A DNA stretch of 62,722 bases, the filler included, from Guillardia theta CCMP2712 (taxonomy: Eukaryota; Protista; Cryptophyta): the NCBI RefSeq assembly GCF_000315625.1. It is 3 parts of 3 records of this genome, joined end to end, with 100 filler letters (N's around TTAATTAATTAA, not from the genome) between each part and the next. Parts side by side here need not be neighbours in the genome. Positions count along the whole stretch, not along the records: positions 1 to 27,982 come from NW_005434381.1; 2 more parts are not named here. One strand, given 5' to 3'. The notes under the pieces were generated by a model. The model saw only the letters and a list, made by a program, of their open reading frames with translations, searched no databases and had not been told where the DNA came from. Shown here piece by piece: positions 970-8,387 of this stretch. How positions within the stretch are numbered: the stretch's first letter is position 1; each line of letters starts with the position of its first letter. The position numbers and the translations under genes are program-made.

Positions 970-3900
970 CTAGGGGTCGAGACATCCTCTGGGAGTACAA
1001 GCATGGCCAAAGGAATACCTATCGTCAGTCTCCTCGTATACTCCCGGCTCCTGTCCTTCATCCCCCACGTGGACACCTTTCGCCTCGTCCTCCTCCTCCT
1101 CGATGTCTCCTCGATCTTCTTTCCCTCCCCTCTCTTCCGTCTTGTCGGCACCTCGGGCCTCGACCACTATGTGGCGCAGAAGTTCAACCTGCGGAGGGTC
1201 AGGAGAGAGGACGAGGACGAGGACGAGGACGAGGACGAGGACGAGGACGAGGACGAGGACGAGGACGAGGACGAGGACGAGGACGAGGACGAGGACGAGG
1301 ACGAGGACGAGGACGAGGACGTCACCTTGAAGATCCGCCCGAGGGAGTCGGACAGGGTCAGCTCAACGACTGAGTTGAGGGGGCCAGCGAGTTTGTCCTG
1401 GAGGTCGGAGGGGCTGAGGAACTGCACGAGGGAGCCGTTGACGAGGAGGAGGAGGTCGCCGATCTTGATCTCCTCGTTGTCGTAGAGCAGAGAGCAGCAA
1501 GACTCGCCGTTGCGGTCCCGGATGTCGTAGAGGTCCGTCACCCGGTAGGGCATCGACCAACTCAGTTTCAGGCCCACAAGAGCAAGCTCATCCTGCCTCC
1601 TGGTCGCCTCCTCTCCCTCGCCCCCGCTCGTCCCCTCGCTCCACTGCTCCTCCATGAGAACCGGGATCTGGTCGAGGAGGAAGAAGAAGGACTGGCTGAG
1701 ATGTTCGACCTCCTGCTGCAGCAGCGCAAACTGATGCTTCCTCCTCTGCTCCTGCAAGCCTCCTTCCTCTGCGAACAGACCCACGTCCACCACAACCTCC
1801 CTCTTCTCCTCCTGCACTTGTCGCGTCAGCCTGAAGTTGCGACGGTACTGTTCGAACACTCCCTCTAGCGTGTCGCAGCTCTTCGTCCGTCCCCTCCGCT
1901 TGCTTCTGTGTAGCCTCCTCCTGAAGATGAACGGGAAGACTAGGATGTGGATGGCGGAGGAGAGCAAGGCGAGGAAGAGGAGGGCATCAAGAGAGCTTGC
2001 TCGTGCTGCTCTCGTGTCCAACAAGGCTGCTGGCCTCTTTGACACCTCGGCAACTCCGGCAGCCAACAGCAGGATGCCGTCCCTGGAGCAGGCGCAGGAG
2101 GCTTCGACGCCGACCTCCGTCCGCTCAATCCCCATCAGCTCGCAGTCGCTGCTGCTCCAGTCTCCTTCGCTCCACAGCAAGCAAACAATCTGTTGGGTCT
2201 CGTTGACCCCCCCCGTTTGCTGCCGCACCCGCACATTGAAGCATCTTCCTCCTCCTGGACACGTGGCAGGGCCCGGCAGGAAGCGGAAAACGGAAGCTCG
2301 AGCAGAAAGGACGGCGAGCCCTGGTAGCAACTTGTCGACGCTCCATACGAATCGGAGACTGGCGAGGAGGAGCGATCCTAACGGCACTTGGACACTGGAG
2401 GATCTGCGGAGAGAGGAGAGAGTAGAGGAGGAGATGGTGCAAGAGAGGTCGAGCAGCAGTGAAACCTCTGTGAATGGCTGCGGGGAGGCAACGATGGTGA
2501 GATCGAGCGAGTTGCCCTGGTAGAGGAAGGGACGCTCGGACGAGACCATGGCAGTAGCGTACGAGGAGGAGAGGGAGAGCACCGTGGTGACAGATTGTGA
2601 CTTGATGGTGTCCGCAAGGGAGACGAGGAGGGAGGGAGAAGTTTGGAGGATGTTGTCGAGAAGGCTGACCGAGCTGACCATCCCTCCTCCCCTCAGCTGG
2701 TCCGCGTCCAACTGCTGGACCGTCGAGTTTGCCAGCTGCTGGAGGCTCAGGATCCCGTCGGGCTGCAGCTCAGTTGGGCTGCTGGAGAGGCTCAAGGAGG
2801 AGGAAAGGACCTGGCCAGCTGTCTGGGGTGAGAGCGACTCTTCCACTCCTCCTCCCGACATCTTCTTGAGCAAGACGCTCCTCACCCGCATCCTGTACGC
2901 CAGCGATGAAGCAAGTAGCGCCCGACTGCTGCTCCTCCTCCGCCCCCCGTCCAGCTGGTCGGAGACGCTGGTGGTCAGCTGCAGGATCTGATCGACTTGG
3001 TTGAGGTCGGCCATCTCTCCGAAGGCTCCCTCCAGCACCGCAAACGTTCCATCCTCCGTGGTCGACCCGCCGTCGGTGACGAGCAGACTGAGGGGGGAGG
3101 AAAGGGAAGACGCCCCCAAGCTGTTGGTGACGAGCACAGCAGCCTGGTAGGACCCTTGCTCGCTCCTCAAGAAGTAGCTCGGAGAAGACAGAGCCCCAGA
3201 CCACACTGCAGAAGAGGAAGGGAACGAGGAGGAGGAGGAGGAGGAGGAGGAGGAGGAGGAGGAGGAGGAGGAGGAGGAGTTCCAGTCAGTGGGGCTAAGG
3301 CCAAACTGATAGAGGAGGGGGAGATCTTGGGATGTCCATTCCTGGCAGAGGAAGACGAACTCGGTCTGCAGCGCGACTCCTTCCGTCGGCTTGATGCTGC
3401 AGGTCCCTCCACTAGGCGGGAAGCTCTTGTAGAGGAGGATGGACGACTTGCCTGCTGTCCCAGCGCTCTTGCTGGTCACCGTGAGGGTGAGAGTGTACCT
3501 GCCGGGGAGGAGGTTCGGGTCGCGGAGGAAGAGAGAGAACTGAGGAGAAGCGGTGGCGGCAGGGAGCGACTGCGAGGACAGGGCAGGGAGGACATCCTTC
3601 CCCTCCCCGTCCAGCAGCGACCAGGCGAAGTTGATGTCAGCTTGGGAGGAGCTGCCAGCGACGGACACCCACGAGAGCGTCTGGGAGAGGAGGAGAACGT
3701 TGGCGTCGATCACTGCGTCCTCCGACAGCGTCAGCACGACGGAGTCCTGGTCGAACCTCTCGCCCTTGATCATCAGCAGGCGAATGCGAACAAAACTGAC
3801 ACCGTCTAGCAGCATGCTCCGAACATCTGCGAAGTATGCCGTCAGCCCTTCCTGCTCCTCCTCTGCCCCCTGCGCAGCTCCTGCCCTTGCTTCTCCTCTA

Positions 3901-6900: not shown

Positions 6901-8387
6901 GTTCTTGCTGTACTTGTAGTGACAGGGGAAGGGGCTTGCGGATCGCACAGAAAACAATCTCCGTACACCAAGACTTCGCACATCGACAGGATCTTGTTGT
7001 TTCCTACCAGGTCGACGAAGAGATACCGGCCCTCTCCCTCGCATGACTCCGCGTAGTAGGTGCTGGAAACCTTCGACTGATCCTGGTAGCAGACAGGATT
7101 TTCCTGTAGAACCAGCGAGTCTCCGAGTCGAACTTGGAAGCCGACGATCCTGTTAGAGCAGCAGTCTGCTCGGTTCCAGATAACCACGGACGAAACCCTC
7201 CTCCTCCCCCCCATGTCCAGCATCCACCAGGGGTCCGTCTGCATTTCAGTGTGCGAGCAGGATCCGGAGAAGAAGTTGGTCTTGATCACTCCGTCGTTGC
7301 TCCTGGAAGCCTCTGCCCCCGCTGCCACCGACGACTGACTCGTGCTGCATGCCGAGCTGTAGTCGTTGCCGCACGAGCGAGCAAGGTTCACCTGTCCTCC
7401 TGCGCACGCGCTGCAGGTTGCGCTTCCTCTCGTGGTTACCTCCTTCCTCCTCAGTGCCTCGGAGTTGTTCGTCCGGACAGTTTGAGGGGGAGGTGAGACC
7501 TGGAGCGAGCAGGAGGCGTTGATGAAGTTGCGGCATTCCTCTCCCTCCGGACAGAAACCGGTCGGGTTCGAGCCTCCTACTCCTTCCTCCGCCCAAAGGT
7601 AAAGCTCTTCCTCCTTGTCCTCTTCCTGCCTCCCCTCCTGACCTCGCATGCTCTCACCAGCCACCAGCTTTCCGTCCAGTTGAACCGTGATGTACTTGGA
7701 TGGTATGTGAAGCAGCAGCTGCAGAGTGACTGAGCCCGAGCATGAAGACGATGCTTCCTCCGAGACCACGATCCTCCTTGCGCACGTCTGACAGTCTCCT
7801 CGACCCATCCTGACATGGAAAGCTCTCCTCCCCTCTGACGTGGTCGAAATATGCACGGCTGAGCCAGGAGAGCCCTGGACGAAGACTGTTCCGCTGGATG
7901 ACGAGCATGGGACCGCACAGGTGAGTTTGACGGTGAGGTCCAGCGAGAGTTGGGTGGACGCGGCTGAGGCGCAGAAGCAGGTCAGCAGGAACAGGCAGAT
8001 GAATAAATCGCATCCTAGGGAACACAACATCTCTCTCTCACTGTTGCGATTGAAAGCCGCTGATCAAGACATGTTCCCAGTAGAAGAAGCAAACCCACTT
8101 TCATCGTAACGACAATGCATGGGAATCGAAAATCCTATAAGAGAAGATTGTTAGGTGGAGGTAAAACCTGCCATGTGCAGCATAATAAACACAAACACGA
8201 ACGCATGTGCAAAGAATTGCTGCAAAGAAACTGAAAGACACTGACAGCTGGCCTGAGCACGACCAGAAGTCGAGGAGACTACCATGATGAAAGAAACAAG
8301 AACAAGAAGCAAGACTCCTCTCGAACGAGCGGGAGGAGAGGAGCGTGCATGGTACCAGATATTCTGCTGGCGTAAACCCATATCCAT
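970..8387 (-). CDS. Large multi-exon single-pass receptor: F-type lectin, Thr/Pro stalk, IPT/Ig-like, PKD/REJ, GPS-like, TM, PDZ
   Basis: Built from ORFs 5322..8030, 3898..5439 and 1167..3926. F-type lectin: HTEMQTDPWW..WNRADCCSNR. REJ: LDGSLSYDPD..YQWSC and PPSGGTCSIKPTEG..FVFLCQEW..DLPLLYQF. GPS-like: CLLW..W..C..CAC. PDZ: IKIGDLLLLVNG..LAGPLNSVVELTL. A final intron (~1190-1325) splices to VELLRH..CLDP* ending at 970. Start is either 8030 or an upstream exon at 8387. Confidence 0.8.
1207..1320 (+). repeat. (GAGGAC)n microsatellite within the last intron of the receptor gene
   Basis: About 19 tandem hexamers, flanked by GT/AG sites on the minus strand. Confidence 0.95.
6770..6900 (-). repeat. 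Coding 27-bp tandem repeat (PAPTTSTTT)n, mucin-like stalk
   Basis: About 5 copies of gtcggagctggagtagtagttgaagtt. Confidence 0.9.

Follow-up and report, generated by a model that had tools for sequence, protein, structure and literature searches.

A predicted single-pass receptor gene of Guillardia theta CCMP2712 that joins an F-type lectin to REJ, GAIN, and PDZ-like domains

REJ and GAIN domains are best known from animal polycystins, sperm receptors, and adhesion G-protein-coupled receptors (GPCRs). What kind of protein, then, is encoded by a locus of Guillardia theta CCMP2712 in which both appear to stand behind a fucose-binding lectin? The locus lies on the minus strand near one end of the window, by which we mean the whole stretch of DNA that was analyzed (62,722 nucleotides [nt], three joined parts of assembly GCF_000315625.1, the first of which comes from NW_005434381.1 and holds the locus). 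An initial annotation had read positions 970 to 8387 as a polycystin/adhesion-type receptor comprising an F-type lectin, a mucin stalk, an Ig/IPT-like region, a REJ module, a GPS-like motif, a single transmembrane (TM) segment, and a cytoplasmic PDZ domain. The listed elements and their order on the minus strand were borne out, and the single gene and the single-pass topology hold; the family name does not. We put the probability at roughly 60% that the locus is one gene, encoding a type I membrane glycoprotein of ~2,238 residues, a receptor built of lectin, mucin stalk, TIG-like region, REJ, GAIN, TM helix, and PDZ-like domain, with the mechanism and origin proposed below. As far as can be read from its sequence, the gene belongs to a large lineage-specific family of REJ receptors, in which its shuffled domains make it unusual.

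The coding sequence runs from 8030 to 1170, followed by a stop codon at 1169-1167, and comprises three exons with 6,714 nt or 2,238 codons in total; the outer limits given by the initial annotation were thus wider than the coding span of 1167-8030. It draws on three successive long open frames of the minus strand (frame 0, 8063-5325; frame 2, 5580-3901; frame 0, 3926-1170), which contain no stop over 2.5, 1.5, and 2.7 kb. Exon 1 (5489-8030) starts with the ATG at 8030 and extends to the donor; it specifies the signal peptide, an N-terminal region that contains Cys, the lectin and its mucin stalk, and the larger part of the TIG-like region. In exon 2 (3927-5441), the TIG-like region ends, beta-rich repeats follow, and REJ begins. 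Exon 3 (1170-3826) contributes the remaining REJ, the GAIN domain, the TM helix, the cytoplasmic tail, the PDZ-like domain, and a polyserine tract. Intron 1 (5442-5488) leads from frame 0 to frame 2, with the donor AGG/GTCTGA at 5488, a pyrimidine tract, and the acceptor CCGCAG/ ending at 5442. This pair was the best GT-AG combination among the frame-compatible candidates. Alternative pairs, among them introns of 68, 86, and 143 nt and donors upstream of 5488, had poorer signals or lost sequence that aligns with paralogues. Intron 2 (3827-3926, 100 nt) leads back from frame 2 to frame 0, from AG/GTGAGA at 3926 to TTCGCAG/A ending at 3827.

The joins were compared with related sequences. The genome searched comprised 87,145,349 bases in 669 contigs, in which the contig of this locus bears the internal label C293, and all searches were made exon by exon. 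The paralogues examined were C61a (C61:~284.8-291.5 kb), C61b (C61:~306-318 kb), C150 (C150:~38.5-57 kb), and C42, together with the relatives P0001 and P0003. The REJ profile (Pfam PF02010) is collinear across intron 2. In the homologue P0001 (1,245 residues) and in C61a, one frame covers the equivalents of exons 2 and 3, and the exon 2 product is 30 to 31% identical to both over about 490 residues. In four paralogues, REJ is immediately preceded by the counterpart of the last part of exon 1, and the anchors on the two sides of intron 1 are separated by 35 residues here versus 33 in C61b. Because REJ is collinear over intron 2, relatives are contiguous over exons 2 and 3, and paralogues link the end of exon 1 to REJ, the predicted model is shown to describe a single intact, intron-containing eukaryotic gene. 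No coding feature was recognized in the 1.1 kb between the stop codon and the contig end, where a Pfam scan of the open reading frames (ORFs) returned no match.

The predicted protein opens with a signal peptide of about residues 1 to 26 (7953-8030; hydropathy peaking at 2.25 immediately behind the first Met), followed by ~200 residues (27-226) that contain several Cys and gave no family match in the Pfam scan. The F-type lectin (fucolectin/FTP) domain occupies 6957-7346, close to the ~6960-7380 previously proposed. It matched Pfam PF22633 above the cut-off (E value of 7e-14, residues 246 to 337 of the exon 1 ORF). In phmmer searches of the PDB, it found FBP32 (3cqo, 2.2e-40, across both 3cqo domains), eel agglutinin (1k12, 2.5e-18), 2j1r (5.9e-12), and the streptococcal F-type modules SpX-1/Sm-hPAF (about 5e-12). 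As a prediction, the assignment of this domain is unambiguous. The expected fucose motif is present as a His and R-A-D-C-C-S-N-R and aligned without gaps to 1k12, so that the spacing from the His to R-x-D-C-C-x-x-R equals that of the eel lectin. The corresponding residues of 1k12 we take to be H52, R79, C82-C83, and R86, in the numbering of Bianchet et al. 2002.

Conservation relative to the eel lectin includes the His, Arg-x-Asp, the vicinal Cys-Cys, the second Arg, and the Phe-Phe pair preceding the His. At the calcium-site positions, Asp, Ser, Cys, and Glu are kept, and two Asn positions read Arg and Val. The predicted fucose-binding pocket is complete, and we infer that the domain binds fucose. 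Eel agglutinin and striped-bass FBP32 share with it the fold family, the His/Arg/Arg triad, the vicinal Cys-Cys, and the motif spacing; they are small secreted lectins, whereas here a single domain tips a 2,238-residue membrane protein. The nearest neighbors in a word search were a fish fucolectin-like protein (44% identity) and the lectin module of an actinobacterial alpha-L-fucosidase (42%), and REJ was found in none of the nearest neighbors. Elsewhere in the genome, a second domain with a His...R-x-D-C-C...R/K F-type lectin motif (L021, C54:8505-8774) sits in a 684-residue open frame that does not adjoin a REJ domain. The lectin of our locus is followed by a Thr/Ser/Pro-rich tract of ~110 residues (6612-6947, from translation), in which a 27-nt (9-residue) unit is repeated 4.9 times at 6768-6898 according to Tandem Repeats Finder, in agreement with the mucin stalk of the initial annotation.

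Between stalk and REJ lies a beta-rich spacer of ~375 residues (5489-6611, running into the start of exon 2). Its language-model features matched TIG clusters of the ESM Atlas at 0.93, with 191 of 256 features in common, and TIG domains occur in 3 of the 43 closest relatives of the protein. Pfam returned no match on the region. The Ig/IPT-like region described earlier therefore stands as a probable TIG assignment, resting on those features and on the relatives. The REJ domain itself (2988-4341) is split by intron 2 and was recovered above the PF02010 cut-off on exon 2 (E value of 2e-16, profile positions 74 to 145) and on exon 3 (E value of 2e-21, positions 238 to 440). Profile positions 11 to 149 map to 3934-4341 and positions 237 to 442 to 2988-3647. 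A perfect in-frame (GAG)x18 of the plus strand at 3226-3279 encodes about 18 serines within it. At about 2960-3010, between REJ and the helical subdomain of GAIN, the alignment of 43 relatives contains a nearly invariant R-R-L-L-A-S-S-x-A-Y-R-M-R-V-R, present in the whole subfamily.

The membrane-proximal ectodomain was assigned to GAIN by structure. A stretch of 401 residues, beginning at the end of REJ and including the TM helix, was modeled with AlphaFold2 from an alignment of 15 paralogues and relatives. The model reached a predicted local distance difference test score (pLDDT) of 76 and a predicted template modeling score of 0.72. It consists of a helical subdomain, a beta-sandwich, and a long helix, the first two forming a GAIN domain at 2049-3059 that ends in a GPS-like motif. 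The best Foldseek matches were the GAIN domains of adhesion GPCRs (CELSR1, 6.6e-9; BAI3, 7e-9), with BAI2, latrophilins, CD97, GPR110, and Gpr126 as further matches. In VIA-align comparisons the top eleven were all GAIN domains of adhesion GPCRs, with Z scores from 19.0 to 12.1, whereas unrelated helical proteins reached Z scores of 11 or less; the root mean square deviation (rmsd) from Gpr126 was 3.0 Å over 234 residues. With BAI3 (4dlo), latrophilin (4dlq), CELSR1 (8vy2), and Gpr126 (6v55), the model shares the two-subdomain fold (Z scores of 17 to 19) and the position of the last beta-strand after the C-x-C motif. It differs from adhesion GPCRs in having no 7-TM domain, in a sequence identity of only 10 to 14%, and in the residues at the cleavage site.

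Those residues belong to the GPS-like motif, located at 2055-2183 by regular-expression search and paralogue alignment. The scaffold of four Cys and two Trp is present as C-x2-W...W...C...C-x-C at residues 582 to 613 of the exon 3 ORF, and a hydrophobic last strand comes after it. This confirms the Cys/Trp motif noted before; no Pfam GPS match was obtained on the protein. The motif ends in C-A-C-S-R-D-G, compared with C-x-C-F-H-L-T-D/E-F in canonical paralogues; SRDG replaces HL↓T. Among the 43 closest relatives, C-x-C-x3-G is likewise the consensus. Because SRDG occupies the HL↓T position, autoproteolysis of this GAIN domain is not to be expected. The single TM helix follows at 1923-1991 (hydropathy of 2.43, helical in the model, with an Arg/Lys-rich stop-transfer stretch behind it) and is the only hydrophobic segment besides the signal peptide.

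On the cytoplasmic side, a juxtamembrane region and a charged, probably helical linker (1581-1922, from translation) gave no family match. They lead to a divergent PDZ-like domain at 1323-1580, recognizable by an LVGL loop of the x-hydrophobic-G-hydrophobic type and a G-D-L-L-L-L-V-N-G strand. The region alone found nothing in a word search and marginal matches only in a phmmer search of the PDB. Two paralogues of the domain, which the genome encodes within otherwise unrelated proteins, gave PDZ matches below the threshold, as the region itself does, and a three-sequence profile that included these two returned almost only PDZ entries from the PDB, the best being InaD-like (0.0015). All of the 50 top Foldseek matches to the model of the region were PDZ domains, and so were the 50 top matches in a Foldseek-independent scan (VIA-wide) of 48,161 chains, with Z scores up to 8.1; PDZ domains of C-terminal proteases superimposed with an rmsd of 2.4 Å over 76 residues (Z scores of 7.5 to 8.1). 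The named ESM Atlas clusters for the region were PDZ as well. These lines, each weak by itself, agree, and we consider a PDZ-like fold of the tail domain probable. On the REJ and PDZ folds, whose absence the initial annotation had named as a ground for dropping its reading, the outcome was in its favor, although for PDZ the paralogue profile and the fold searches speak in favor and the sequence score stays below the threshold.

The same divergent domain was seen in a long coiled-coil protein (L012, C46:536968-537267) and in an EML-type double beta-propeller/WD40 protein (L013, C120:154234-154452), which suggests a lineage-specific PDZ subtype. Just before the C terminus, a perfect hexanucleotide repeat of 19.2 copies at 1207-1321 (Tandem Repeats Finder), reading (GAGGAC)x19 on the plus strand, encodes about 38 serines. 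Since this repeat and that at 3226-3279 are 100% pure, both are likely to be length polymorphic or prone to assembly error.

How does this gene relate to the rest of the genome? At least 35 REJ loci were found, many in open frames of 2,000 to 6,000 residues, along with about 70 PKD_channel matches and nine canonical GPS motifs, each about 0.8 to 1 kb downstream of a REJ; the genome holds a large expansion of polycystin-type parts. REJ and channel matches are almost never adjacent, with one possible exception at C40:521.6 kb and C40:528.8 kb. The subfamily to which our gene belongs has a common layout, seen in the four paralogues as well as in P0001 and P0003, of TIG-like region, REJ, the nearly invariant Arg-rich motif described above, GAIN with C-x-C-x3-G, and one TM segment. 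Its members differ from our gene in carrying ephrin-receptor-like repeats in the place of the lectin (11 in C61a, at least 45 in C61b, and at least about a dozen in C150) and in their short tails, which lack PDZ or any recognizable signaling domain in the paralogues examined. C150 also contains Laminin_G_3, a Gly-rich domain, and a discoidin-like domain; the last was considered as an F-type lectin and rejected, as the motif is absent and only 22 residues aligned.

An exhaustive comparison of the REJ-GAIN part with 1.84 billion representatives by HMMER yielded 456 relatives, the best with 31% identity. Of the 43 closest, 38 contain REJ, and none contains an F-type lectin, discoidin, or PDZ domain. 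A word search with exon 3 gave two distant matches only, low-complexity words having saturated the candidate list, and a search of the literature for the pairing of F-type lectin with REJ found no relevant paper. Because the 43 relatives lack lectin and PDZ and the neighbors of the lectin lack REJ, the combination of lectin, REJ, GAIN, and PDZ is unique within the sequences searched and looks like the product of recent domain shuffling. This is consistent with the earlier view that the architecture had not been described.

Comparison with known systems shows why the name of polycystin/adhesion-type receptor does not fit. Polycystin-1 and PKDREJ have in common with our protein a REJ followed by GAIN/GPS directly before the first TM segment. 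In contrast to their 11-TM core, there is one TM segment here, and neither PLAT nor PKD_channel matches, no 7-TM core, no HL↓T/S site, and no PKD, LRR, or WSC domains were found. That REJ and GPS normally precede multi-pass cores, as the initial annotation put it, was overstated, given a single-pass REJ-GAIN subfamily in the same genome. Sea urchin suREJ1, which it had cited, is reportedly itself single-pass, with C-type lectin domains. The likeness to suREJ1 extends to a large single-pass surface protein, a lectin N-terminal to REJ, and a juxtamembrane GPS region. The two differ in the lectin (C-type there, F-type here), in the segment between (an EGF module there, a mucin stalk and TIG-like region here), in the absence of HL↓T from the GPS, and in the PDZ-like domain of the tail.

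We regard this resemblance as an analogy of function, and no orthology is claimed; because the host is a protist-like eukaryote, the pairing of lectin and REJ would have been assembled independently of suREJ1. The suREJ1 ligand is given as a fucose sulfate polymer in PMC4700764. A nonanimal surface protein with REJ and GPS is Ectocarpus Esi0130_0068, found in male gametes and proposed as a gamete recognition receptor (PMC4700764). Unlike ours, it has 6 to 7 TM helices and a polycystin-channel signature, and no lectin. Since a function as gamete receptors has been suggested for REJ-type proteins of brown algae (PMC4700764) and of Cryptosporidium, a mating role of our protein is conceivable by analogy.

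How might such a protein work? We propose that the ligands of the lectin are terminal fucose or related sugars displayed on another surface, for example by bacteria, by other cells, by mates, or in the cell's own coat, and that the mucin stalk, of a type that would be O-glycosylated, holds the lectin away from the cell. The long, rigid ectodomain would act as an adhesion or recognition arm. As GAIN is probably uncleaved, it would serve as a fixed stalk and not as a tethered-agonist switch. In the cytoplasm, the PDZ-like domain may recruit partners via their C-terminal tails and so couple binding to the cortex or to channels. The whole would have originated by domain shuffling within the lineage-specific single-pass TIG-REJ-GAIN subfamily. 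Since the binding motif is intact, a convergent fucose-sensing receptor for prey, bacteria, or mates, as suggested by the initial annotation, is a reasonable inference. A bolder version, which we consider quite unlikely, is an independently assembled suREJ1 analogue whose F-type lectin senses fucosylated ligands of mates, prey, or bacteria and whose PDZ domain and linker dock one of the many PKD2-type channels of the genome. In such a "split polycystin" complex, a PDZ interaction, and not an 11-TM core, would link the receptor and channel halves.

A sensing receptor is not the only use to which these domains could be put. The protein may be mainly structural or adhesive, the lectin anchoring the cell's own fucosylated coat or matrix or gluing the cell to substrates, with PDZ tying it to the cortex. 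Mucin stalks are typical of adhesins, a GAIN domain without the cleavage triad is not expected to act as a tethered-agonist switch, there is no kinase, channel, or G-protein-coupling core, and the tails of the paralogues are short and without recognizable signaling domains. Against this stands the combination of PDZ and charged helical linker, which is unique among the paralogues examined and suggests acquired intracellular coupling, in a genome whose 70 PKD-type channel matches offer possible partners. We regard a mainly structural or adhesive role as unlikely, though it is the most serious of the alternatives.

The remaining doubts concern the gene model and the assignment of domains, and several points weigh against the receptor gene as we propose it. 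The model was read from genomic sequence alone, and neither of the two protein libraries searched was found to contain the protein. Intron 1 measures 47 nt, compared with 100 to 108 nt for the two other introns seen. The TIG assignment of the spacer is a language-model lead, the PDZ-like domain scores below the cut-off (PDZ_6, E value of 1.4e-4 and 22 bits versus a cut-off of 27; PDZ, E value of 0.24), and its AlphaFold2 model has a low-confidence pLDDT of 53. The unusually short intron and the purely genomic model would also suit two genes, exon 1 encoding a secreted lectin-mucin-TIG protein and a second gene, starting from an ATG at 5439 that lies three bases past the proposed acceptor, encoding a REJ-GAIN-TM-PDZ protein. 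This is improbable, as the second product would lack a signal peptide in spite of its extracellular-type sequence up to the TM segment, the TIG-like region and REJ are contiguous in four paralogues with conserved spacing at the junction, and frame 0 stays free of stops until 5325, well past the donor. More improbable still is a decaying pseudogene or an assembly frameshift in which the frame changes are indels. Two such changes do occur in a 6.9-kb locus near a contig end, and the perfect 19-copy hexamer is possibly assembly prone. However, each change coincides with a well-formed GT...AG and a pyrimidine tract, the three frames are open over their full lengths, and the binding-site residues as well as the structural Cys and Trp residues are intact. 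A single gene for a lectin-bearing REJ-GAIN receptor remains our preferred reading.

If so, REJ and GAIN would here form a large modular family of single-pass proteins in a protist-like genome, one member of which carries a textbook fucose lectin in exchange for a Cys-rich sensor and has acquired a PDZ domain inside the cell. The predicted fucose ligand could provide a tractable entry point to the function of REJ-GAIN ectodomains outside animals. The protein would also be an example of a GAIN domain probably unable to self-cleave, and a rare case of a receptor that bears PDZ itself rather than a PDZ-binding tail. To our knowledge, canonical F-type lectins are not commonly reported in the host lineage, and the gene would extend their range. 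No existing concept is overturned by these predictions.

In several paralogues, GPS motifs were seen without a TM helix after them, namely in L035 (C50:70350-72000), L036 (C121:206950-208600), L037 (C35:588050-589700), and L038 (C7:722300-723950). The first three are of the HLT type, and that of L038 is noncanonical. In all four, extracellular-type Cys-rich sequence follows, which is unusual for GAIN, and the GAIN domain would therefore not be juxtamembrane there. Elsewhere in the window, also on the minus strand, an ORF of 796 residues at 17714-20104 encodes both a SAM domain and a GTPase domain of the dynamin family, and a fragment of a Ty1/copia-type reverse transcriptase (RVT_2, E value of 7e-19) lies at 26786-27970, at the contig end.

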